A stretch of DNA of 63,175 bases, counting the filler, from Octopus bimaculoides (Eukaryota): NCBI RefSeq assembly GCF_001194135.2. It is 6 parts of 6 records of this genome, joined end to end, with 100 filler letters (N's around TTAATTAATTAA, not from the genome) between each part and the next. Parts side by side here need not be neighbours in the genome. Positions count along the whole stretch, not along the records: positions 1 to 29,008 come from NC_068994.1; 5 more parts are not named here. One strand, written 5' to 3'. This document shows, piece after piece, positions 1,803 through 28,100 of this stretch. How positions within the stretch are numbered: position 1 is the stretch's first letter; each line of letters starts with the position of its first letter. The notes under the pieces are model-generated. The model did not search any database, was not told the DNA's origin, and worked only from the letters and a program-made list of their open reading frames with translations. The translations under genes were made by a program, and so were the position numbers.

Positions 1803-3033
1803 CAAAGTACTGTTGCTGAATATCTCAAGTTGTGAGATTTAAAAATAGTAATTTTCTAAATGTTCTTTTATTCTTTTAACTTTTTTCAGNNNNNNNNNNN
1901 NNNNNNNNNNNNNNNNNNNNNNNNNNNNNNNNNNNNNNNNNNNNNNNNNNNNNNNNNNNNNNNNNNNNNNNNNNNNNNNNNNNNNNNNNNNNNNNNNNNN
2001 NNNNNNNNNNNNNNNNNNNNNNNNNNNNNNNNNNNNNNNNNNNNNNNNNNNNNNNNNNNNNNNNNNNNAACGAACGCAGGACTTGGAAATAGCCTCGAAA
2101 GTTTCTCAGAATTATGGTTCTACTGTTGAAGCAGAAAATAATGCTGCAGTGGCTCAACCATAGTAGCTACAGATGTATTTTTGAATGTTGAAATAAAACT
2201 AGCCCTGAAAAGTGATTTCTTTTGTGGAGCAGAGTCTCGTCGAGGTCTAGTATGTTATGTCTACGAAAATTTTCTGCGACATGATCGCACTCAAATGTCC
2301 AGGCTACGATGCTGCTTAATTCTGGTCTAATTAAGAAAAAAAAAAGGGGGGGGGGTACTTTTCAAAAGTACCTTTTTTTTTATTACGTTGAGTCAAGTTG
2401 AAAAGAATTAGTAAGCTCTTCTGTTTTGTCTGCGTTACTCACCAGTATCCTTTCTGCATTAATAGACTCTATCGTAGACTTACCCGTTCAAAAGACTTTT
2501 CTGAAATGGCTCTCTGTTTACACGGGTACAAATACTTCCGAAAATTATTTCGTAATCAGTTGTGTGTACTCTAAGGTTATTGTCTAAAGACTACAAAAAT
2601 ATGGTGTCGGTAGTTTCAATTAATTTCGCTGCGCCAATCAAAAGGTATAGTTAGCTTGAATTTAAGGTAAAAGACTACCCGAGCTGTCGACTACGTTTCC
2701 TCACCGAGCTTCATTGCTGAGCTAACACTATTCTTTGCATTTCTCCAAGAATACAATTCCTTTTCTGATTTAGTGTCCACTCACCGCTTTAACCGGTTTT
2801 TGGTGGTTTGTTTTCTAACCTTTCAAACATTCGATTCGCTCAGAATGCTTTCTATTCTGCATCCAGATTTTAAACTTGTGTTTACAAATCCACTCTACTT
2901 GATCGGTAATTAAACAGAATGCTCAAAGAAGACATTATTGGATTAATTGACTCACCCTGGCAAACTCAAATACACAGCGTTAATGGTAACAGCATAAGTT
3001 GATTGCACCGAACTTCGCAGAAATAATTGACGA

Positions 3034-3195
3034 GGCGCAGGAGTGGCTGTGTGATAAATAGCTTGCTTACCAACCACAAGGTTCCAGGTTCAGTTCCACT
3101 GCGTGACACCTTGGGCAAGTGTCTTCTACTATAGCCTCGGGCCGACCAAAACCTTGTTAGTGGATTTGGCAGACGAAAACTGAAACAAGTCCATC

Positions 3196-3200
<5 letters not shown>
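3034..3200 (+). mobile_element. SINE family A 5' half
   Basis: Same head sequence; truncated by a TA repeat and gap. Confidence 0.85.
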
Positions 3201-3231
<31 letters not shown>

Positions 3232-4314: not shown

Positions 4315-4605
4315 GAAGCAAAATTTATCTAAGCTTTCGATAGAGTCGACCATCAATACTTGGTGGCCGTTCTCACGGCGGCCGGTTTCGGTCCCGTTTT
4401 TCGTGATTGGATCACTGCAACATACAGCGACATTTTCTCGGTAGTTCGGGTGAATAGTGGCCAATCGGAACCATTCAACATCATGCATTCGGTCCGTCAA
4501 GTGTGTCGCCTCTCCTCTCTTCTGCTTGTACTGGCTCTTGACCCAATACTGTAGAAATTGGAGGCATTGAGAAGCATCCCGCGCGAACTAGGGCGAGGGA
4601 GCGGC
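4315..4605 (+). mobile_element. L1/Tx1-clade LINE reverse transcriptase fragment
   Basis: LSKAFDRVDHQYLVAVLTAAGFGPVFRDWI...VVRVN...SEPFNIMHSVRQ.C.LS.LL.VLALDP, across frameshifts. Confidence 0.8.
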
Positions 4606-4802
4606 GTTTCTTCCGGTTCTTTACGTTCCGAGTTCAAACTCCACTAAGGTCGATTTTTCGGATCTATAAAATAAGTACCAGTCGACTAGCCCCCACTGTG
4701 CTCAGTATAATTTACTGCCACTTGATTCGGTGGACCTGAAAAGAACCGGGGTTTGCACCCCTTACTCCTAATGGAGACTTATTAAAAACATAACTAACAA
4801 AA

Positions 4803-5178
4803 CAGGAGTGGCTGTGTGCTAAGTAGCTTGCTTACCAACCACATAGTTCCGGGTTCAGTCCCACTGCGTGGCACCTTGGGCAAGTGTCTTCTACTATAGC
4901 CTCGGGTCGACCAAAGCCTTGTGAGTGGATTTGGTAGACGGAAACTGAAAGAAGCCCGTCGTATATATGTATATATATATATGTATGTATGTGTGTATGC
5001 TTGTGTGTCTGTGTTTGTCTTCCTAGCATTGCTTGACAACCGATGCTGGTGTGTTTATGTCCCCGTTACTTAGCGGTTCGGCAAAAAGAGACCGACAGAA
5101 TAAGTACTAGGCTTACAAAGAATAAGTCCCGGGGTCGATTTGCTCGACTAAAGGCGGTGCTCCAGCATGGCTACAGTC
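4803..5178 (+). mobile_element. SINE family A copy
   Basis: Near-identical to 45954-46370. Confidence 0.85.
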
Positions 5179-6201
5179 NNNNNNNNNNNNNNNNNNNNNN
5201 NNNNNNNNNNNNNNNNNNNNNNNNNNNNNNNNNNNNNNNNNNNNNNNNNNNNNNNNNNNNNNNNNNNNNNNNNNNNNNNNNNNNNNNNNNNNNNNNNNNN
5301 NNNNNNNNNNNNNNNNNNNNNNNNNNNNNNNNNNNNNNNNNNNNNNNNNNNNNNNNNNNNNNNNNNNNNNNNNNNNNNNNNNNNNNNNNNNNNNNNNNNN
5401 NNNNNNNNNNNNNNNNNNNNNNNNNNNNNNNNNNNNNNNNNNNNNNNNNNNNNNNNNNNNNNNNNNNNNNNNNNNNNNNNNNNNNNNNNNNNNGGTCCTG
5501 CTTAGTTCTTAAAATGTTTAAATACCTCACCCTTGCAAGAAAAAAATAAAATGAAATAAAATGAAAATAGAAAAAAAATGGAAAGAAATAAAATTATAGT
5601 ACCGAGCCATTATGGTGCAATACAACCCTTAACACCACCACCGCCGCCACCACCACCACCACCACCAGCGCCTCCACCAACGCCTCCACCTCCAGTATCA
5701 AGACCACCATCACAACCATCGCCAGCATCATCACCGTCAACTCATATCTCTTATCATCCATTACAGTTACAAGGCTCACATGAAGTAATTTAATAATTAA
5801 AAAAAAATTAATAAACCTCAAATATGCAGAAAATGTATTTAATGCCAATTTAATTATTTAAAAACGCAATTTGAACAGAAATCCCAAAATTTTGCAGTGA
5901 TAAACACCTGACAAGCAAATCTGTGGTATTGAGCAGAATATTTGCTGAAGCCCATCTTTTATACCAAGACATATCATGTACATGATTTGTCTTGGTATAA
6001 AAGTTGGACTACAGCAAATATATATATATTCCCCGCCTGGATTGGACACCGGTCATTTTTGCCTCATTTTTAAACGTGAAATGAAGTTTTTGCTCAAGAA
6101 TACAATGCAGTGCCCGGTCCAGGAATCGAAACTACAATATTACGATCATGAGCCCAATACTCTAACCACTAAGCCACGCGCTTCCCGTATAATAATAATA
6201 A

Positions 6202-6738
6202 ATGTCCGGATGCAGTACCAGGCAGTGGCTCTCATGACTTCTCATCTTAACTGATTGGAAGTGTTATCATGTACATTGTTTTGTCTTGGTATAAAAGATG
6301 TGGACTATAGCAAAAATTCTGCTCAATACCACAGATTTGCTTGTCAGTTGTTTGACCTTAACCATTTGAGCATGTCCCTTAGTGGCTGACGATATGTCCA
6401 TCTCTGATCGCAAGCAGAAATTGTGGGGGAGCATCATAGCCATGTGTTGAGAGTAATTCTTTGTGGTTTGAATAATTCACCTTTGGAAACATCCTTAAAC
6501 AACCCTTATTCAAGGACCTTTTGAGCGGGATGGGCGACTCAACCTAAAGATAATTCTAACTGGGTCCCATCTGTAAGGTCTGTTCGTCTTGATATGAGAT
6601 CACTATGTCGCGCACATATAGTTGTGATGCATGTGCCTGGTGTACCCTTATCAGACGGGTAGTCATGATGGGTATACTGAGCTTCGTATATTTTACCCCA
6701 GTGTCACTTTGATGGCATACACTGTTCTCTCACTCAAT
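6202..6738 (+). mobile_element. ~540 bp interspersed repeat, copy 1 (AAT-flanked)
   Basis: Colinear and highly similar to 32975-33534 (ggatgcagtaccaggcagtggctctcatga ... ctctcactcaat); non-coding. Confidence 0.85.
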
Positions 6739-7580: not shown

Positions 7581-8322
7581 TGATGATGGTAATGATGATG
7601 ATAATGATGGGGATGCACCTGATATAATATTCCATAAGAGTCAAATCTCAGTAACTGATGAAATCATAATAAAACGTAGACACACCTTTATAATANNNNN
7701 NNNNNNNNNNNNNNNNNNNNNNNNNNNNNNNNNNNNNNNNNNNNNNNNNNNNNNNNNNNNNNNNNNNNNNNNNNNNNNNNNNNNNNNNNNNNNNNNNNNN
7801 NNNNNNNNNNNNNNNNNNNNNNNNNNNNNNNNNNNNNNNNNNNNNNNNNNNNNNNNNNNNNNNNNNNNNNNNNNNNNNNNNNNNNNNNNNNNNNNNNNNN
7901 NNNNNNNNNNNNNNNNNNNNNNNNNNNNNNNNNNNNNNNNNNNNNNNNNNNNNNNNNNNNNNNNNNNNNNNNNNNNNNNNNNNNNNNNNNNNNNNNNNNN
8001 NNNNNNNNNNNNNNNNNNNNNNNNNNNNNNNNNNNNNNNNNNNNNNNNNNNNNNNNNNNNNNNNNNNNNNNNNNNNNNNNNNNNNNNNNNNNNNNNNNNN
8101 NNNNNNNNNNNNNNNNNNNNNNNNNNNNNNNNNNNNNNNNNNNNNNNNNNNNNNNNNNNNNNNNNNNNNNNNNNNNNNNNNNNNNNNNNNNNNNNNNNNN
8201 NNNNNNNNNNNNNNNNNNNNNNNNNNNNNNNNNNNNNNNNNCACACATACTTGCATACATACATATACATACATATAAATATATATATATATATGTATAT
8301 CTATACACTCATACATGCATAT

Positions 8323-8407
<85 letters not shown>

Positions 8408-8467
8408 ACATACCTGTGTGTCTGTGTGTCTGTGTGTATGTATATATATTTGTATGATACAGTCCCC

Positions 8468-9144
8468 TTATGTTGATGACGCTGCTGTCGCTGCTGTCGC
8501 TGCAGCTGTCCCTCCTGAGTCACCAGGACGACATGTGCAATGTGACCCTGGGCAGAAGCCAGCCTTGCAGTTGACATTACACCACATATCCATACCAGGA
8601 ACGACTTCGTATGTATCAACTGGATCACAAATCGGTTCTGGGGTTGTACTTTGCGTGGTACCCGGCGTTGTTGTTGGTGTTGTCGTTGGTGTTGTTGTTG
8701 GTGTAGTGGTCTGTGATGTTGTTGGTGTTGTTGTAGGTGCCGTCGTGGTTGTCGGGTAAGTTTTGCCGCTGCAATCGCAATGGGTATATGGACAAAATCC
8801 CCTGGCACAGTTGATGTCACACCAGTCTTCCATACCAGGTACCCCATAATACATTGGGGTAGTTATACAAGGAAATTCCATTTTTATATCTTGCAGGTTG
8901 TCGCACTTGCAATATTTTGAGAGGCAGTTGCCAGTTGAGCAGTGTTTTGTGCACCATTTGCTTATACCTGCTAAGTCAGTATAATTTCCGTTTCCGGTAC
9001 ATTTGATTTTGCTTTCATCAGTGACTTCTTTTCTCGATACAGGTGTTAAGTCAATATCGGTACGGGTGAATTTAGAACGTGCTTCTACGGTGATATTCAT
9101 ACATACAGCATAGTTTTTCGGGTTCGTGCTTGATGTGAAGTTCA
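8468..9144 (-). CDS. Terminal coding exon 3: end of LPMO-like domain (YAVCMNITV), three 6-Cys modules and a Thr/Pro-rich linker
   Basis: Long polypyrimidine acceptor ttctttcttttcattttctattctag|TG (phase 1, matching exon 2), 224 further codons, then TAA at 8468-8470. Three repeats of C-x14-WC-x3-C-x4-C-x4-C-x-C; PTTT-repeat linker between modules 2 and 3. Confidence 0.9.
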
Positions 9145-9280
9145 CTAGAATAGAAAATGAAAAGAAAGAAATAACCGGTAAAATTCATGCGTCTCACAGC
9201 ATTCTTATATTCGAGTGTTAGGCTTTAAACAACCTTCACTATGTAACGACATTGAGGACATAAGCCATATATTTAACATA

Positions 9281-9448
9281 GGTGCAGACCTGGCAGTGTG
9301 GCTAAGAAATTTGCTTCGTCACTAAACAAGCATGTTTCGTGTTCAATCACACTCGACAACACCTTGGGAAAGTGTCTTCCATTATAGCGACGGGAACTAA
9401 ACAATGATTGGTGAATAAATCTGGAGACAGAAACTGTGAGGAAGCCCG

Positions 9449-9496
<48 letters not shown>

Positions 9497-9520
9497 GTAT
9501 ATATATATATGTGTTTATAG

Positions 9521-9563
<43 letters not shown>

Positions 9564-9755
9564 GGCGCAGGCGTGGCCGTGTGGTAAGAGGCATGCTTCC
9601 CAACCATATGGTTCCGAATTCAGACCCACTGAATGTGGCTATGGTCGGTCCGAGGCTATAGTAGAAGACTTGCCCAAGGTGCCACGCAGTGGGACTGAAC
9701 CCGAAACCATGTGGCTGGTAAGCAAGCTACTTACCACACAGCCACTCCTTGTGCC
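9281..9755. mobile_element. Cluster of SINE family A pieces in intron 2 (9281-9450 +, 9564-9631 +, 9640-9755 -)
   Basis: Family A heads in both orientations, including an adjacent inverted pair. Confidence 0.8.
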
Positions 9756-10404
9756 TGTGTGGAGGAAGAGTAAACCATGTAAGTAAAGAACAAGAAACAT
9801 CGCCGGATTTTTCTTCTTTCAGTAGATTTGTTGAAACTTAAATATTTGAATTACCGTAACAGTTGCTATGGCAGAACCAATGTCGCTACTTAGAGTTTTG
9901 CGTAATGTTTATAAGTTAGGAATTAGAACTCATTGATGAAAAAAATAAACAAAAACAAACGATTATTACAATTATATAATTGTAAATTTGCTGAAATTGC
10001 AAAATTTATTTTGTAATAAAATAATACCGTTTGTTAAATTTGTATTAAGTATTCATAAATTGGGTCTACAAATTGTGTTATTAACCACAATAAAGAATCT
10101 CTGGTAATTTTTATCAAAATTTCCGATACATATTCTTCATGCAGATGAGGTTGGAGAAAAATGCTTTGGTACAAAGCAAAAAAAGAGAAAAAAAAAACAA
10201 AAAAACCGCACTTCAAGAAACGATAGCCACAGATTTCACAAACTTTATACATTTTAGCCCGTCCATTGGACATCTTTTTTTTTGTTTTTGCTTGTGTCCA
10301 GTGACACACCGATTCCAAAGGAATAGGTGTAAATTAATTAAGTTAAACTTCACAGTTTCGATACCTCATTGGTCCAGAACATCATATAAGAGAAGAGAAA
10401 TTTA

Positions 10405-10618
10405 TTTCAACTCTAGGGACAAGGCCTGAATTTTTTTTGGTGGGAGGGGGCCAGTCGATTAGATCGACGCCAGTACGCAACTGGTTCTTAATTTATCGAC
10501 CGCGAAAGGATAAAAGGCAAAGTCGACCTCGGCGGAATTTGAACTCAGAACGTAAAGACATACGAAATACCGCTAAGCATTTCGCCCGGCGTGCTAATGT
10601 TTCTGCCAGCTCGCCGCC
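10405..10618 (-). mobile_element. SINE family B copy in intron 2
   Basis: Reverse complement of the family B consensus. Confidence 0.85.
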
Positions 10619-10677
10619 TTATAATAAAAGAGAAACTTCGAAAGATATAACGGTGTGCGGTCAATACGTATATTTAC

Positions 10678-10966
10678 CTGGTTCGATGATCCATTGTACC
10701 ACGCAGTGTGAGCAGTCCATTTCTGATGGTAGAATTACTATGCCTATGAGAGCTTCAGTTGTGTATGTAACATGGGTCAGCTTCATTTGGTGTTTCATGA
10801 AACATTCTTGCGTGGCTGGTGTGCGGTCATCTTTCCTCGGACATATGTAATGTTCCAGAGTGAACAGAAAAGAGTCTTTCAGTGGGAAAGATGAAGTTAA
10901 TGTGTTTGTTACACTTGAGTAAATTATTGTGGAATTTTTCAGCATCACAGTTTGGTTCGAAAATAC
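10678..10966 (-). CDS. Coding exon 2: divergent AA15 LPMO-like (chitin-binding type-4) domain core
   Basis: Acceptor tgttctcttctag|GTA (phase 0) and donor CCAG|GTAAAT (phase 1); 289 nt with no stop. Contains ICPRKDDRTPATQECFMKHQMKL and ILPSEMDCSHCVVQW, matching remembered AA15 motifs LCPxN...TQECL..HxL and LPxxxxCxxCVLQW. Confidence 0.8.
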
Positions 10967-11663
10967 CTAGAAGAGAACAGACATACATGAATGGCTGAAA
11001 TACAGAAATATTTGCAATATTAAACTACGGACGACATTATCACATATACAAAGACCTGCAGTTAGCAAGACTATATGGACTGTGGCTCTGAAGTCATTTA
11101 ATAACATCTTGATAAATGGTGGTACTTAAAGAGATTGATAGTGCCTAATGGCGGATGACTTATAGATATGGCTTCTTAAATACGTCGCTTACATTAATTC
11201 TAATGAAGGTATGGACAGAAACCATAACTTCTTTATTCTGACATATATCGAGATATCTTTTAATAGGCGATACCGGTGCATTCGTATATATGCGCATGTA
11301 TGTATGTAAAGGGCAGATGGCGCTACGTAAGACCTTTTATATTTTATTCATTCCATAGGATTCACGACGTTATCATTTGACGGAATTTCCACTCAAGTAT
11401 TCTGTCATTCTATCATATTCTGTCGGGATCAGGAATTCATGTTTGGGATAAGTAGCACCTTCAAGCAGGTTTTGAATCGGGGATTTGTGTGTGTAGTTCT
11501 TTTCTCCGCCTTAATAATTCTTTCTACTGGAAGCTCAAGGCCTCACATTTTGGGAGAAGGGATTAAGTCGATTACATCGACCCAGTGCGCAACAGGTACT
11601 GCTTTTTTAATCGACCTCGAAAGGATGAAAGGAAAAGACGACCTCGGAGGAATGCACGCCGCC

Positions 11664-11718
<55 letters not shown>

Positions 11719-12422
11719 CAATAACAATAATAGTCCTTTCTACTAAAGACGCAAGGCCTGAAATTTTTTGTTTGGGGAGGAGTTAAGTCGATTATATCGA
11801 CCCAAGTACGCGACTNNNNNNNNNNNNNNNNNNNNNNNNNNNNNNNNNNNNNNNNNNNNNNNNNNNNNNNNNNNNNNNNNNNNNNNNNNNNNNNNNNNNN
11901 NNNNNNNNNNNNNNNNNNNNNNNNNNNNNNNNNNNNNNNNNNNNNNNNNNNNNNNNNNNNNNNNNNNNNNNNNNNNNNNNNNNNNNNNNNNNNNNNNNNN
12001 NNNNNNNNNNNNNNNNNNNNNNNNNNNNNNNNNNNNNNNNNNNNNNNNNNNNNNNNNNNNNNNNNNNNNNNNNNNNNNNNNNNNNNNNNNNNNNNNNNNN
12101 NNNNNNNNNNNNNNNNNNNNNNNNNNNNNNNNNNNNNNNNNNNNNNNNNNNNNNNNNNNNNNNNNNNNNNNNNNNNNNNNNNNNNNNNNNNNNNNNNNNN
12201 NNNNNNNNNNNNNNNNNNNNNNNNNNNNNNNNNNNNNNNNNNNNNNNNNNNNNNNNNNNNNNNNNNNNNNNNNNNNNNNNNNNNNNNNNNNNNNNNNNNN
12301 NNNNNNNNNNNNNNNNNNNNNNNNNNNNNNNNNNNNNNNNNNNNNNNNNNNNNNNNNNNNNNNNNNNNNNNNNNNNNNNNNNNNNNNNNNNNNNNNNNNN
12401 NNNNNNNNNNNNNNNNNNNNNN

Positions 12423-12460
12423 TTTGCCGTACGGAATTGCGTGTCGTTCTCCCGCTGGCG

Positions 12461-12503
<43 letters not shown>

Positions 12504-12665
12504 CGGCTCGATTGGTCTTTCGCCCCTACACCCGGTTCCGACGATCGATTTGCACGTCAGAGGCGCTTCGGACTTTCACCAGAGTTTCCTCTGGCTTCGT
12601 CCCGATCGGGCGTGGATCGCCATCTTTCGGGTCCCCGGCCGCCTGCTACACCTGAGTGCAGCTCC
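12423..12665 (-). rRNA. Isolated 28S (LSU) rRNA fragment, domain II region; probably a pseudogenic or dispersed copy inside intron 1
   Basis: Reverse complement contains universally conserved eukaryotic LSU strings GGGACCCGAAAGATGG, GAAGCCAGAGGAAACTCTGGTG, CTGACGTGCAAATCG and TAGTAGCTGGTTCCCTCCGAAGTTTCCCTCAGGATAGCTGG. Truncated by the N-gap on the left; similarity is lost beyond ~12665. Confidence 0.93.
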
Positions 12666-14114
12666 CTAGCCACTAGGCCACGCGAATTCACTTGAAAATT
12701 TACTGAAATGAGTAAAGCAACACTCTTCTCGGCCAATGCTTCACAGGATTCCACAGAAAGAAATGAAGCCAGAGTGAAAGTCAGCAATGGCCCAAAAGCT
12801 CTGGACTAAAATCAGAAATAAAAGTTTGATTTTAGTTGCACGGGGTTAATTATTTGCTAGAAATAATTACAAAAGTAAAATAATGCATGATACTAATACC
12901 GAATATAGATTAATTAGCCAGATTAATCAACAAGGAGATAATTAATTAGACCAATTCCTTTCCTCAATCCTTGCCAGTCCGACTGTCCCGCGGCCCACGT
13001 TGCTAAAGGATGGCTCAGGCTTGCCTCTCCACGTTCAGAGAGGGAAGGCAATGAACACGGACCAGTCTCTCTATTTGTCCCTCACACAATTTCGTAGTCC
13101 TTTTGACCAATGCCGATCACCTTTAATTCCGTTGTTTCAGACACCCTTACGGTGACGTCACTACGTATGTGAACACATCTCTCTGGGTCCTGGTTTGACC
13201 TGAGTGTTTCTGCTGCCGTAGTGAGCTTCAGATCCGTTATATGCAGAAGAAATGAGAGAGGATACTCCTGAACTGAACACCTGCGTGACTGGAATTGCTC
13301 ATTCCTCAATGAAATCCATACAAAAATATATATATTTACAAATGAAATAAAAATAAGGGGATATAAAGGGTACAAATATAACAAAAATTGTAACCGGGGT
13401 TACCCGAGACAAAAGTTTCTTACTAAATCGCAAAGAATACGTTGGAAAGACAAGTTTGATACTGTAGTTCTAAATGCCTGAAATGAAGAAAAAATACGCT
13501 ATAGTCACAATCAGAACACTTGAATACAAGTTAGCTTTTTCGCTCAGATTTCCAGATATAGATGTCGATATTTTCGTTTCTACTCATCTCAGGGGCACAA
13601 CGTCTTACTTAAACAAGACATTCTTTTGTTGAAGTTTCTTGGCAAGAGTTTTGTTCTAGAAATGTAATGTTAATGATCAAATCATAAATGTGTAACGGAT
13701 AATTTTAATATATGATAGTGCATACCGTTGGAAAAGAAATACAAATATAACAATGCATGTGCATTTTGAAACGACAAAATGACTCTACCAAAAAACAAAG
13801 ACGCAAAGTACAATTAACTCACTATGCTCTATTCACTCTAATACATCAGGTAGGTTTTAGATGAAGTTATCTAAGTTAGAGAAGGAGAAATAGATGGTTT
13901 TTGAAGAAATAGAAAAGACAGAGAAATGAAACGCCAATTCTACGAGTTATCGGTTATAGCGTTCTTCATGGCGAGAGAAATGTTGCTGATTAATAGAATG
14001 AACTTCCTTTGAATACCATATGGGGTGTTTTGACATGTGGCACCGTCGTCCAACATTAATAATAATCGTCCATATCGAATTGAGGTTAATGAAAAGTCTA
14101 AAAAAATTGCTTAC

Positions 14115-14237
14115 CTCACAAATAATATTTTGTTTGCCGACAGGCACTGCAATAGTTTCTTTGACAGAAAATACTATCACGAAAAATACCAAAAATGGAA
14201 ACAAGAAAATTCTGATATTTAACATTGGTTTTAACAT
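14115..14237 (-). CDS. Coding exon 1 (signal peptide) of a secreted AA15 LPMO-like / Cys-rich-module protein
   Basis: Encodes MLKPMLNIRIFLFPFLVFFVIVFSVKETIA/VPVGKQNIICE: basic N-terminus, hydrophobic core and a T-I-A cleavage-type site. Ends at a strong donor GAG|GTAAGC (phase 0), matching exon 2. A polypyrimidine-AG acceptor at 14257-14258 suggests an upstream non-coding exon. Linkage to exon 2 is inferred from phase and position. Confidence 0.72.
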
Positions 14238-14663
14238 AATGGCGCCTGTTTCTCTCCTTAAAAGTGAAAGAAAAATTGAATTAATTTCTTAAAATATTTT
14301 GATATTTAAGAAAAAAATAGTTATATAGTTCAATCGTGGTTGAGTTAAATTCAAATTCAAATTTTTCCAAACAATGTCATTAAGTTCTTTGAGATGTTCA
14401 GGTTTGGCACTACTGGAATTAATACTTATATATATACATATATATATTTCTGTTCAACGAAGAATTTCTGTTTTTCTTTTTCTTTTTCTGTGTCTTTGTT
14501 CTATGTTAAAGGAATTGTGCACAAACTCTGGGAAGCGAAAACCTCCTCACGTTCAAAGAAACATTTTGAAAATTTTCAAAGAATAATATCATATATATAT
14601 ATATATATATATTACATATATATATATACAATTATATATATATGTGTTTATGATTATATGTAT

Positions 14664-14736
<73 letters not shown>

Positions 14737-14949
14737 NNNNNNNNNNNNNNNNNNNNNNNNNNNNNNNNNNNNNNNNNNNNNNNNNNNNNNNNNNNNNNNN
14801 NNNNNNNNNNNNNNNNNNNNNNNNNNNNNNNNNNNNNNNNNNNNNNNNNNNNNNNNNNNNNNNNNNNNNNNNNNNNNNNNNNNNNNNNNNNNNNNNNNNN
14901 NNNNNNNNNNNNNNNNNNNNNNNNNNNNNNNNNNNNNNNNNTATATATA

Positions 14950-14985
<36 letters not shown>

Positions 14986-15570
14986 TGTATGTGTACACCT
15001 ACACACAGGAGCACACAAGACTTTGTTTTGAAGACCGAATTTTTTGAGCATAACGACCTGTAAAACCCACACATAGGAGGCGTTTTCCCCAGTTACGGGT
15101 CGATATGCATGTATACATATATAAACAAATATAAATATATGAATGTGGGTGTGTCTGCAGTAATTGTCAAAATTATGTCAGGAATTTACTTTGGACTCGG
15201 AAATTTCAATAGACTGACTCCCGTTTTAACGAATTTCTTCCATCCTCATCCCTCACCTCTTTCTCTATCACTCGACTTCCTCATTGTCATACTCATCCTA
15301 CCGTCATGTCGGGTCTTGCTTTACTTGGCGCCTCGTTTTTACTTCAAAGCTGGATATACAACATACACAACAAATATGCACACATACACGCGCGTACGTG
15401 CGTACGTGCGCGTACGTGCGCATGCGCATGTGCCTCCGGTGCAAGGTGGTACCGACCACCTTAAAACAGCGGGTGTTTAGGTGCAGTTATAATCCGTGCA
15501 TCGAGGGGCTAGCAGCCCACCTCGTAGGTGGATGGATTCACATTAAAGTGGTTCAGAGTCAAACTGTAAT

Positions 15571-25193: not shown

Positions 25194-28100
25194 CTGTTAA
25201 TATATGAAAGAGATAGTTGAATAACTGTAAACCTACTTTTGGTCCACCCTGTATGTATTTACATATTCTTCAGAATTTATAACTAATTATTATTATAATG
25301 TGCGATATCCGCGAAACTCTTAGTAATTACAGAGTATAATCCAAACTCTAAAATATATATAATTACATTCTAAATCAGTGTTAGATACTTTCCCCCCTCA
25401 TGTTTGTACATTAAAAAATAACAATAATTAATAACTGTTACGAGTTTTTTTCTTGTTAAACCATACAAAGCATTTTCTCCCGTCCGCAACGATATTTCTT
25501 GTTATTCGCTTTTCTTAGGATTGTCGCATTTTCTATTAATCTCTTGTTTTTCAGTAAATCACAATTGCATTGGGTGGAACCTTTATATCTTGCCTTTGTT
25601 CATGCGCTATTATTGTTCTTGTTTAGGCGCGAGTCATCTTTGATTGAACGAATCTATTATCAAAAATATTATCAAAAATATTTAGTTATAAAGTCTCCTC
25701 ATTTTTGGTTTATTTATGATCACGTTCCTTAATAATGTGTCGTTGTTTTTTTTTTTAAGTCGGCAGTGATTGATAATTGGAGACTCGTTGTTATTTCTAG
25801 CCGGTTGAGAGCCAAGGTACACGTAGCCTCGATGTTAATTTAGTTTTGAATGAAAACCACCAACGCAAGGTATTTTGTAGGCGAAATGTTGGTCTTAATT
25901 TCAAACACATTAAATAAAGAATATAGCAGCGATTAGCATATTCAGGTTCGAATTTTACGGAACGTATTACTAATGGACAGGTACATCATTATTTCGATTT
26001 TTGCTGTTCATCGTGTATTGACTATTTTATTCACGGCTTTGTAGACATCTATTTATCCCTGTCCGTTTATTCATAAGATATAATTGCCAACTAAATATGG
26101 CGGTCCTATAGAAGACGGTATTACTGTTGTTTTTAACCCCAGGAAGCCACATCTATCTTTTTAAACACATATCTATATGCTTATTGAATTTAAAATTTTG
26201 AAAACGTGGTTTCTTGCATATTCGGAATCTCTGTCATCTAAAACATAAGGGGAAAAAAATTTCGAAAAAGTTCAAAATTTTAGGGTGGGGTGGGGGTGGG
26301 TTTAAAATTTTTCTTTTTTGCATATTCGTAATCTCCGATATCTTAAACGTTGGAATCCGGAAAATTTTTTCCAGAAAGTGCATTTTTCAAGGAGAGGTGC
26401 GAAATTGCATTAGCCCCCCCCCCCACTTTCATGCGTCTGTTCGTTCAAGAGTGACCCAAAACAAAACAACAACATTAACAACAACAACATCAACAAGAAA
26501 TTTTAACGAAATTTAACGACAGAAAGAAGAAAGAAAAAACAATAAATATTTTATGATGGACGTGTGTCGGGGAGAGTGACTTGTTTGATGCTCGTTAAAC
26601 ACCTTTTGGATGAAACCGCAGTGGTTTTGTTTCTGTTACGAGTTGTTTGGGAAGTTTACAATTAATAAATTCGCTACACAAAGAAAACTTTCACAGAACC
26701 ATTGCGGCAGGACACACCCAACGACGGTGATTATGATGAGAATAATAGCAACAGTTTCTAATTTATACTCAAAGTCCGTGGGCAGGGCTATATGCGACTA
26801 AATAACCACCCTGTACCCGACCCACTTTCCATTTTATCAACGCCTTTTTTAATTTGGGTACAAGGCCACACACATTTATGTCTATAATCTGTGTGTGTGT
26901 GTGATTGTGTGTGTGATTGCGTGTGTTGGATTAAACGTATCTCACCGTTGCACTGGTGAGTTATTTTATCGTAACCAGAAGGATAAAAAGGGACCCATTA
27001 GCCTACATGGGATGTGAACTTAGAATGCAAAGGGATGTAACATTGGCCTGGATATTTACTAACACGTGAATATTTGTGTTCTCTTCTTTCAGAGAGACGT
27101 TATAATTAATGAGTTTCGTAAGGTGCGTGGACTAGTGGTTAAGATGTTGGTCGCACGATCGTAACATAGTAGGTTCGATTCTCGGACCTGGTGGCGCGTT
27201 GTGTCGTTGTTCAAGCTACTTCGTTTCACATTGATTGTCGCTGCCTTCCTCTCTCTCCTTCCAGCAGTCACAAACCCCAATGTTCCACTGAGCCAAGAGA
27301 GGGTGTTCCATCTTTGCTCATGACTATATTAGCAGCTATAAGAATTATAAAAAGCATGGTACCAGCTGCCAGATCATACTCGTTTATGAAAGCTTAACTT
27401 CAAAGGTCTGGCTTATTGCATAATTTATAAAGACTTATAATTTATAAATATCATCTCTCTTCTGATTAAAAGAAATCTAGATTACCGCTTTTTAAAAAAA
27501 ATTATAGTTCGTGCCAAGGTTCTTCCCTCCGACAGCCAACGCACTTCTCCATACAATAAAAGTTTACTGAAGTCGGATATCTTGAGTTGACACTCGATGT
27601 GTGACTTTTAATGAAGTTCATAATTTTGATCGCATCTTATATTACCACCCTTTACTTCCAAGAAAATGACCTAATTACTAAAGACGCTTGATGAATCACG
27701 CAATGAGTGAATAGTGTTACAAAATGCAATGCATTCAGATTTAACTTCAGTTTCAAACCTTTACATTTTGTTCCGTCTTTGCTGCATAAACACCAACACA
27801 ATTATTCTATTCCTCTAAAGGTCTACTTTGAAGAAAACGTCTTTAGTTGTACGGTTTTCTAATTATCGATAAAACAGTAAATCTTCATGCATACTGCTTT
27901 CAAACTAACATCTAACCAACAGCAACTGTTGAACCATGTTTGTAATCACGGTCGATTTGAATCGCAGATTTAAAACTTATATTTCTTTCAAGAAGTTGCA
28001 CAAATTGGCTATTGCAAATTTCTGCAATCCGTTTACGAATCGAAACATTTGACACTGGAATTATATTTTGTTTCATCTGCACAATCTTTCACTGAATAAT

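Follow-up and report, generated by a model that had tools for sequence, protein, structure and literature searches.

Lytic polysaccharide monooxygenases (LPMOs) are defined by a copper histidine brace. Pseudoenzymes are common in general; to our knowledge, LPMO-family members without the brace are rare and have no assigned roles, the fungal LsAA9B being one studied case. Here we describe a gene in a stretch of the Octopus bimaculoides genome (assembly GCF_001194135.2; 63,175 nucleotides with filler letters included, hereafter the window) that encodes an apparently secreted protein of AA15 LPMO descent, in which the histidine brace has been lost and to whose C-terminal side three cysteine-rich modules are attached.

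Among AA15 enzymes, TdAA15A of Thermobia domestica has His1 and His91 as its copper ligands, with Ala89 and Tyr184 completing the site and Tyr24 and Tyr166 flanking a flat binding face (PMC5823890, PMC9156745), and the insect group I enzyme LPMO15-1 carries two C-terminal 6-Cys repeats that are distinct from CBM14 (PMC9156745). The octopus protein shares with TdAA15A and insect LPMO15-1 the beta-sandwich core motifs FEF.[IL]C....TQEC, LP...C..CV.QW and [FY]..C...., and with AA15 LPMOs an axial Tyr/Phe, a signal peptide and C-terminal tandem 6-Cys repeats with Thr/Pro linkers (the last as in insect LPMO15-1). It differs from them in having neither an N-terminal nor a second His, in the deletion of about 50 residues and of a protrusion, in having 6 domain cysteines rather than 10, and in bearing three modules where insect LPMO15-1 bears two. 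LsAA9B, an AA9-family protein without the brace, is treated as an LPMO-like non-LPMO with no function assigned, as a 2019 study is summarized in PMC10354095; like the octopod protein it is an LPMO-family member that lost its histidine brace, and unlike it, it is a fungal AA9 that is not reported as shortened and is not known to bear the 6-Cys module. No description of brace-less AA15 members was found in the searchable literature, and searches for cephalopod LPMOs or for the accessions of the octopod paralogues introduced below found nothing relevant.

The gene lies at window positions 8468-14237 on the minus strand (as do all its features given below) and is real, intact, unannotated and conserved in octopods: three exons, all open, join through GT-AG introns of phases 0 and 1, with all four splice sites canonical, to give a product of 362 residues. 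An earlier reading of this DNA (the initial annotation) had proposed the same structure, with three minus-strand exons, strong GT-AG sites, compatible phases and a 362-residue open reading frame, and re-joining the exons bore it out; a recount likewise returned the same five N-x-T sequons (NQT45, NST52, NFT139, NIT154 and NYT191) and the even cysteine number, 24. Exon 1 (14115..14237; 123 nt, 41 residues) opens with an ATG at 14237 and ends, in phase 0, at the donor GAG/GTAAGC, where the slash marks the junction. It encodes a signal peptide (residues 1-30; 14148-14237) made up of MLKPMLNIR, a 14-residue hydrophobic core (Kyte-Doolittle mean 3.1 over 12 residues) and then ..ETIA/VPV, so that the predicted mature N-terminus is short, VPVGKQNIICE. 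Intron 1 (10967..14114; GT..AG) holds an assembly gap (11816-12422) and a (TAA)n microsatellite (11665-11732). Exon 2 (10678..10966; 289 nt; acceptor TCTTCTAG, donor CAG/GTAAAT, ending in phase 1) encodes the AA15-like beta-sandwich core, residues 42-137, with the motifs FTLEHYICPRKDDRTPATQEC and LPSEMDCSHCVVQW. Intron 2 (9145..10677; GTAAAT..TTCTAG) contains repeats resembling short interspersed nuclear elements (SINEs) and CA/AT microsatellites. Exon 3 (8468..9144; 677 nt including the TAA stop at 8468-8470; acceptor TTCTAG/) encodes the last AA15-like strand (NPKNYAVCMNITV) and, after a linker, Cys modules 1 and 2; a Thr/Pro-rich linker separates these from Cys module 3, behind which the protein ends in a short tail rich in Ala and Thr. 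The Thr/Pro-rich linker (residues 268-306; 8639..8755) is mucin-like, likely serves as an O-glycosylated spacer, and is shorter in the orthologue from Argonauta described below. A glycosylphosphatidylinositol anchor at the Ala/Thr-rich C-terminus was considered and ruled out, the necessary hydrophobic tail being absent.

The middle region had been read in the initial annotation as carrying AA15 LPMO motifs, a reading upheld by phmmer, by a subfamily profile, by hhalign and by Foldseek. Searched with phmmer against the PDB, the 362-residue model had 5msz_A (TdAA15A) as its sole match, at E 0.005 (model 63-135, chain 80-160), and a profile of the octopod subfamily, built from five sequences, reached the same chain at E 1.2e-9. 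Comparison by hhalign with a canonical AA15 profile, made from 20 lophotrochozoan AA15 domains, gave a probability of 97.95% and E 3e-13 over canonical columns 71-160 of 190 only. The AlphaFold2 model, built on a 60-row alignment, has a mean predicted local distance difference test score (pLDDT) of 78, the N-domain scoring 76-93 and the first Cys module 81-88; a run on the single sequence gave a pLDDT of 33 and was unusable. The initial annotation had suggested AlphaFold with Foldseek and a comparison with Pfam LPMO_10 (PF03067) as checks, and the two came out differently. Foldseek placed the AA15 structure 5msz at the top of its PDB matches (E 2.8e-4, 114 columns), so the likeness to the LPMO beta-sandwich is present; the AA10 LPMOs 7zjb, 8c5n, 6if7 and 7okr stood in the same list among generic Ig-like sandwiches, and a search of a viral structure library gave generic Ig-like matches only. 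LPMO_10, by contrast, had no match at E<=10 in the model or its parts, and likewise none in the Argonauta orthologue, though the profile comparison with AA15 was positive; unlike the window protein, 43 of 105 relatives matched LPMO_10. Nor did Pfam assign any other family to the model or its parts. From these comparisons the window domain is a genuine AA15-fold descendant.

The ligands of the copper site are gone from this domain. Histidines occur in the 362-residue protein only at positions 80, 100, 106, 128, 205, 259 and 339, and with the first of them at residue 80 no signal-peptide cleavage can give an N-terminal His. In the phmmer alignment (numbering checked against PMC5823890) Phe74 (codon 10868..10870) is the counterpart of the second ligand, His91 of TdAA15A, and Asp72 that of Ala89, and Phe also occupies the second-ligand position in Argonauta; both His1 and His91 are invariant across the 20 canonical AA15 domains. 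The axial site is kept, Tyr149 (codon 9110..9112, in NPKNYAVC, ahead of the last conserved Cys) aligning with the axial Tyr/Phe of AA15 LPMOs (Tyr184 of TdAA15A); of the 32 rows of the alignment, 26 have F at this site and 4 have Y, and in the Argonauta orthologue the residue is Phe. In multiple alignments about 50 N-terminal residues, from His1 to just before GKCGxCGD, are absent from the window protein, and this deleted segment includes the region holding Tyr24; the first Cys of GKCGxCGD persists as Cys40, and the second has become Phe. The GN.WG..C.GCG.QE protrusion, of some 15-20 residues and holding Tyr166, is replaced by EPVNFTSSTNPKNY. The initial annotation had argued from the same four features, namely a mature N-terminus without His, a second-His position that is not His, a short stretch in place of GN.WG.C..G..GCG.QE and a much shorter domain N-terminus, and each of them reappeared here. 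Six of the ten canonical domain cysteines are left (C40, C83, C96, C126, C129 and C152), a pattern consistent with the loss of whole disulfides rather than with random decay. The structure falls short of a complete LPMO beta-sandwich with a flat face, to which N-terminal strands, an L2 loop and a beta8-beta9 protrusion belong, a core sandwich being predicted and the N-terminal 50 or so residues and the protrusion being missing. The catalytic domain is shorter by about one third, and neither brace histidine is left; we strongly infer that the protein cannot form a copper histidine brace and is a pseudo-LPMO, the loss of catalysis following from established LPMO chemistry. Since most of the flat substrate-binding face is gone, the modules are a likelier source of any chitin binding than what is left of the LPMO domain.

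An orthologue of the window gene is present in Argonauta hians (BAAFZT010000032.1, locus L003, 2986-6262, plus strand), about 4 kb upstream of GAB1603675.1; it is not among the called genes of the locus and appears unannotated. Its three exons (2986-3105, 4635-4923 and 5676-6262; 120, 289 and 587 nt), the second equal in length to that of the window gene, encode 331 residues, and 193 of 328 aligned positions (59%) are identical to the window protein, with 24/24 Cys and all seven window His conserved. The cleavage motif T-x-A/VPV of the window protein corresponds to S-x-A/VPV in the orthologue and the mature start VPVGKQ.. to VPVTKS.., the mature N-termini reading AVPVGKQNIICE and AVPVTKSNDICE, respectively; the lost-ligand motif is kept, Phe included (ESFLFMLEHYIC). 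Alignment of the DNA succeeds for exon 2 alone (73% over 274 nt) and fails for the introns. Nei-Gojobori counts between the two genes gave proportions of nonsynonymous (pN) and synonymous (pS) differences of 0.161 and 0.731 for exon 2, 0.19 and 0.73 for the whole N-domain, 0.25 and 0.92 for the three Cys modules, and 0.52 and 0.76 for the inter-domain linker; with dS saturated, omega (dN/dS) is bounded rather than precisely valued, and for the folded parts its value clearly lies well under 1. Purifying selection acts on the gene, and no part of the protein is more constrained than the LPMO remnant, a result that speaks against a relic in decay. The initial annotation's view of a maintained protein rather than a decaying pseudogene is thereby sustained, and the orthologue search and dN/dS comparison that it had proposed yielded an orthologue whose folded parts do not evolve neutrally.

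The window gene is a member of a small, tandemly arrayed octopod family. First protein homology searches gave no matches with a linker-free query or with the subfamily alignment, and with the full-length query the Thr/Pro linker dominated the matches; an exhaustive HMMER search found 136 relatives. Four relatives have the same short architecture: XP_029645183.1 (P0008) and XP_036364626.1 (P0025) of O. sinensis, 100 kb apart on one chromosome, and GAB1603672.1 and GAB1603675.1 of Argonauta, on one contig, all annotated as uncharacterized or hypothetical. Like the window protein they have a signal peptide, a short N-terminus ending ..IC[EQN]/, a shortened AA15-like domain without the brace and 2-4 Cys modules, and like the window gene they have three exons with the same intron positions and phases and are arranged in tandem clusters; unlike an orthologue they are only 23-33% identical to the window protein, and are therefore paralogues. 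At the XP_029645183.1 locus (L002, which contains no N), exon 1 is 111 nt long and ends ATTTGCGAG/GT (..ICE, phase 0), exon 2 is 283 nt long, starts ..TCGAACCAA (LSSNQ) and closes with ..WVLKQ in phase 1, and exon 3 reaches the stop codon. Exon 1 ends at the same ..IC(E)/GT position in both O. sinensis genes and in the window gene. No second member of the family was found elsewhere in the window.

One of the O. sinensis models seems incomplete. XP_036364626.1 (locus L001, CM016872.1, 21636-22055) is 184 residues long, reads through the exon 2 donor (..QWILRQ/GKYSQMRS...) and ends early. About 6 kb downstream, at L001 27979-28200, two more 6-Cys modules lie in an open frame, just after a 100-N gap (27749-27848); this is probably the real last exon of the gene.

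C-terminal to the AA15-like domain, as in group I AA15s, lie three tandem 6-Cys repeats: module 1 (residues 186-218; 8903..9001; CTGNGNYTDLAGISKWCTKHCSTGNCLSKYCKC), module 2 (residues 230-262; 8771..8869; CITTPMYYGVPGMEDWCDINCARGFCPYTHCDC) and module 3 (residues 310-342; 8531..8629; CDPVDTYEVVPGMDMWCNVNCKAGFCPGSHCTC). Across 34 aligned copies the six Cys never vary, a Trp is present in 90% of rows or more, and the consensus reads C...G.....PGM..WC..NC..G.CP..HC.C, for which Pfam holds no model. The 105 relatives include the 43 with LPMO_10 and 2 with GH18, and no other domain recurs; a GH18 fragment (P0011) bears the module, and canonical, brace-bearing AA15s with the module come from gastropods, bivalves, Lingula, an annelid, a spider and a tick. 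The initial annotation had seen in the three Cys-rich modules a fusion; given the co-occurrence with LPMO_10, they are instead the ordinary accessory module of protostome AA15 LPMOs and of some GH18 chitinases, and thus ancestral AA15 architecture. An hhalign comparison of the LPMO-like domain with the module found no relation between them. The repeat of insect LPMO15-1, some 33-38 residues long, follows C-X15-C-X3-C-X6-9-C-X4-C-X-C and that of the window protein C-X15-C-X3-C-X4-C-X4-C-X-C, the third spacing being 4 rather than 6-9, a likeness drawn from the published pattern (PMC9156745) and not from an aligned insect sequence. The X473 and X474 modules of oomycete AA15s and GH18/GH19 chitinases, of fewer than 40 residues with 6 (X473) or 4 (X474) Cys, are likewise short Cys modules attached to AA15 LPMOs or chitinases and are proposed chitin binders; unlike the window modules they are reported to be restricted to Saprolegniales, the comparison being one of descriptions and not of sequences (PMC8393829).

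In the AlphaFold2 model the module is a strand-helix-strand unit whose helix carries CxxxC and whose last strand carries CxC. The signature of the cysteine-stabilised alpha/beta (CS-alpha/beta) fold is C..CxxxC..GxC..CxC, with CxxxC in a helix, CxC in a strand and the pairs C1-C4, C2-C5 and C3-C6, and the module consensus fits its sequence pattern; matches to scorpion CS-alpha/beta toxins were sub-significant (Pfam PF14866, E 0.099; PDB 7lgl and 7lgv, E 0.2-1.1). Together with the predicted structure, these make CS-alpha/beta a candidate fold for the module.

Brace losses appear elsewhere among lophotrochozoan AA15-like proteins. In six from bivalves (P0028, P0018, P0042, P0012, P0019 and P0034) SNLLGYFEF stands in place of TANH.GxFEF, as in the motif SNLLGYFEFRLC of brace-less proteins from, for example, Mytilus, Pinctada and Ylistrum, and an AA15-like protein of Lingula anatina (P0064; XP_013390934.1) has QG.. 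for HG.. and ITHGQ for TANH. Like the window protein, these are AA15-derived, carry C-terminal 6-Cys module(s) and have one or both brace His replaced; unlike it, they keep the full domain (PPSRSS, CGG, GKCGxCGD and GCGxQE), and the bivalve and Lingula cases appear to be independent losses. A nemertean protein, Lineus longissimus XP_064622860.1 (P0015), is without the N-terminal 50 or so residues and seems to keep the second-ligand His (AAGSHK), and is either a separate truncation or a gene-model error. Judged from the alignments, there would have been several independent losses among AA15-like proteins, in bivalves, in Lingula, in the truncated Lineus protein and in the octopod family.

We hypothesize, with a probability of about 0.62, that the window protein is a secreted pseudo-LPMO of AA15 descent that acts non-catalytically on or near chitin, its modules probably serving as anchors. 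It would have originated from a group-I-type AA15 LPMO, with a catalytic domain followed by 6-Cys modules, whose catalytic domain would have been cut to a beta-sandwich of about 120 residues held by three predicted disulfides. The losses comprise the N-terminal 50 or so residues with His1 and L2-type loops, the replacement of His91 by Phe74, and the GN.WG..GCG.QE protrusion, and of the copper site only the axial Tyr has been kept. The protein would be secreted and N-glycosylated, and probably O-glycosylated; the three 6-Cys modules would tether it to chitin, and the conserved beta-sandwich remnant may have its own function, as a binder or a structural element, within an extracellular matrix of chitin or mucus. 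Anchoring to chitin is probable for the modules because elsewhere AA15 LPMOs and GH18 chitinases are almost their sole carriers. Several points weigh against this hypothesis: the LPMO-like domain escapes Pfam LPMO_10; Tyr24 and Tyr166, both flanking the binding face of TdAA15A, fall in deleted segments, and the remnant is still the most conserved part; the 6-Cys module is only a putative chitin binder; the gap in intron 1 is itself unreadable; the selection estimate comes from a comparison in which dS is saturated; and the gene is unannotated both in this O. bimaculoides stretch and in Argonauta.

The main rival, which we judge unlikely though well ahead of the others, is that the protein is functional and its function unrelated to chitin, as an antimicrobial, toxin-like or mucus-organising secretion (of saliva, skin mucus or egg coat) with a beta-sandwich that binds protein. 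The dismantled LPMO binding face would suit such a role, as would the mucin-like Thr/Pro linker, the strand-helix-strand modules with their weak matches to CS-alpha/beta toxins, and the position of the Argonauta cluster next to a gene of a 7868-residue product whose DNA matches the Thr/Pro-linker DNA of the window many times; the toxin matches, however, are all non-significant, a CS-alpha/beta fold is compatible with carbohydrate binding, and the partners of the module across protostomes are overwhelmingly chitin-active domains. It is far less probable that the remnant domain still has some enzymatic activity, through a metal or redox site newly formed from other residues. The domain histidines H80, H100, H106 and H128 and an aromatic axial residue at 149 (Tyr in the window protein, Phe in Argonauta) are indeed conserved between the orthologues, but none of the four histidines is conserved in the paralogues P0008, P0009, P0010 and P0025, and a domain identity of about 70% makes conservation of 4/4 His unremarkable, so that this is probably mere orthologue-level conservation. 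We know of no LPMO-fold protein that binds copper without an N-terminal amine.

Lower still in probability stand two readings of the gene itself, and the first is that it encodes a normal, competent AA15 LPMO whose His-bearing exon lies in the gap at 11816-12422 or further upstream, exon 1 being spurious. The 607-N gap does lie wholly within intron 1, exon 1 is short, hydrophobic open frames arise easily in T-rich DNA, and an extra exon with a length that is a multiple of 3 would fit a phase-0 intron. No reading frame crosses the gap, however, and order and orientation across it agree with the gap-free Argonauta locus, where a matching exon 1 (MLKP...AVPV.K.N.ICE/GTAAG) stands 1.5 kb upstream of exon 2 with no AA15-like coding exon in the intron between them (L003 3106-4634). 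In O. sinensis the RefSeq model XP_029645183.1 has nothing between the corresponding two exons but an 11-kb, N-free intron, and the second His is missing too, within exon 2 itself. When the readable window and loci L001-L004 were searched in six frames, a profile of the canonical AA15 N-terminus (72 columns) gave E values above 5 throughout, and no exon of the HG.L.EPP.R type turned up; the full-length canonical profile, run over the same frames, matched only exon 2 of each gene. Given the gap-free orthologue structure, the intron positions of XP_029645183.1 and the empty N-terminal search, a His-bearing exon hidden in the gap is very unlikely; the alternative upstream exon, giving a His-initiated chain, that the initial annotation had named as fatal to its proposal was looked for in readable DNA and in relatives and was not found. 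Equally improbable is a decaying pseudogene or a chance assembly of open frames without function. The absence of the gene from the annotations in every protein set searched and the loss of both catalytic residues would be expected of one, but the exons are all open with four canonical splice sites, 24 Cys are kept and pN is far below pS against an orthologue too distant for its introns to be aligned, and the paralogues keep the same 6 domain cysteines and Trp133.

The window as a whole is AT-rich, repeat-rich metazoan DNA with eight N runs. Microsatellites (ACAT, AC, AT and TAA) lie at 8245-8413, 9450-9560, 11665-11732, 14586-14736 and 14944-14992; the three gaps closest to the gene (7696-8241, 11816-12422 and 14737-14941) each have such a repeat no more than about 85 bases away, which probably explains the assembly breaks there, and the CA/AT array at 9450-9560 is not adjacent to any gap. 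SINE-like repeats at 3033-3231, 4803-5178, 9637-9750 and 10390-10628 have many matches, at 82-95% identity, in the O. sinensis loci L001 and L002, and an open frame at 4333-4551 (plus strand), whose weak resemblance to a reverse transcriptase (Pfam RVT_1, E 8.6e-4) does not reach the gathering score, is probably a remnant of a long interspersed nuclear element. An Rfam scan of the window gave no match. In Argonauta, the gene of the 7868-residue product (L003 14498-22723, plus strand) is presumably a giant mucin-like gene; its DNA has more than 20 matches, at 73-78% identity, to the linker DNA at window positions 8639-8752.

The finding exposes gaps in annotation, with the orthologue missing from Argonauta and XP_036364626.1 of O. 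sinensis shortened by splice-donor read-through, and it draws attention to a 6-Cys module that has no Pfam model and is a companion of AA15 LPMOs and GH18 chitinases throughout the protostomes. We raise as a tentative and rather doubtful extension that octopods keep a tandem family of minimised LPMO relics, each a three-disulfide beta-sandwich of some 120 residues cut from an AA15 enzyme, with a new, selected, non-oxidative role, and that the modules are an unrecognised, protostome-wide family of carbohydrate-binding, defensin-like CS-alpha/beta domains; if this were true, the relics might, for example, organise or cap chitin fibrils in the beak, radula or sucker cuticle, or compete with or regulate true LPMOs and chitinases. 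Here an animal AA15 lineage that no longer has either ligand, and whose domain is shorter by about a third, has nevertheless stayed under purifying selection and undergone duplication in octopods, and the question of what role an LPMO fold takes on after the enzyme is lost becomes testable in an animal with prominent chitinous structures.

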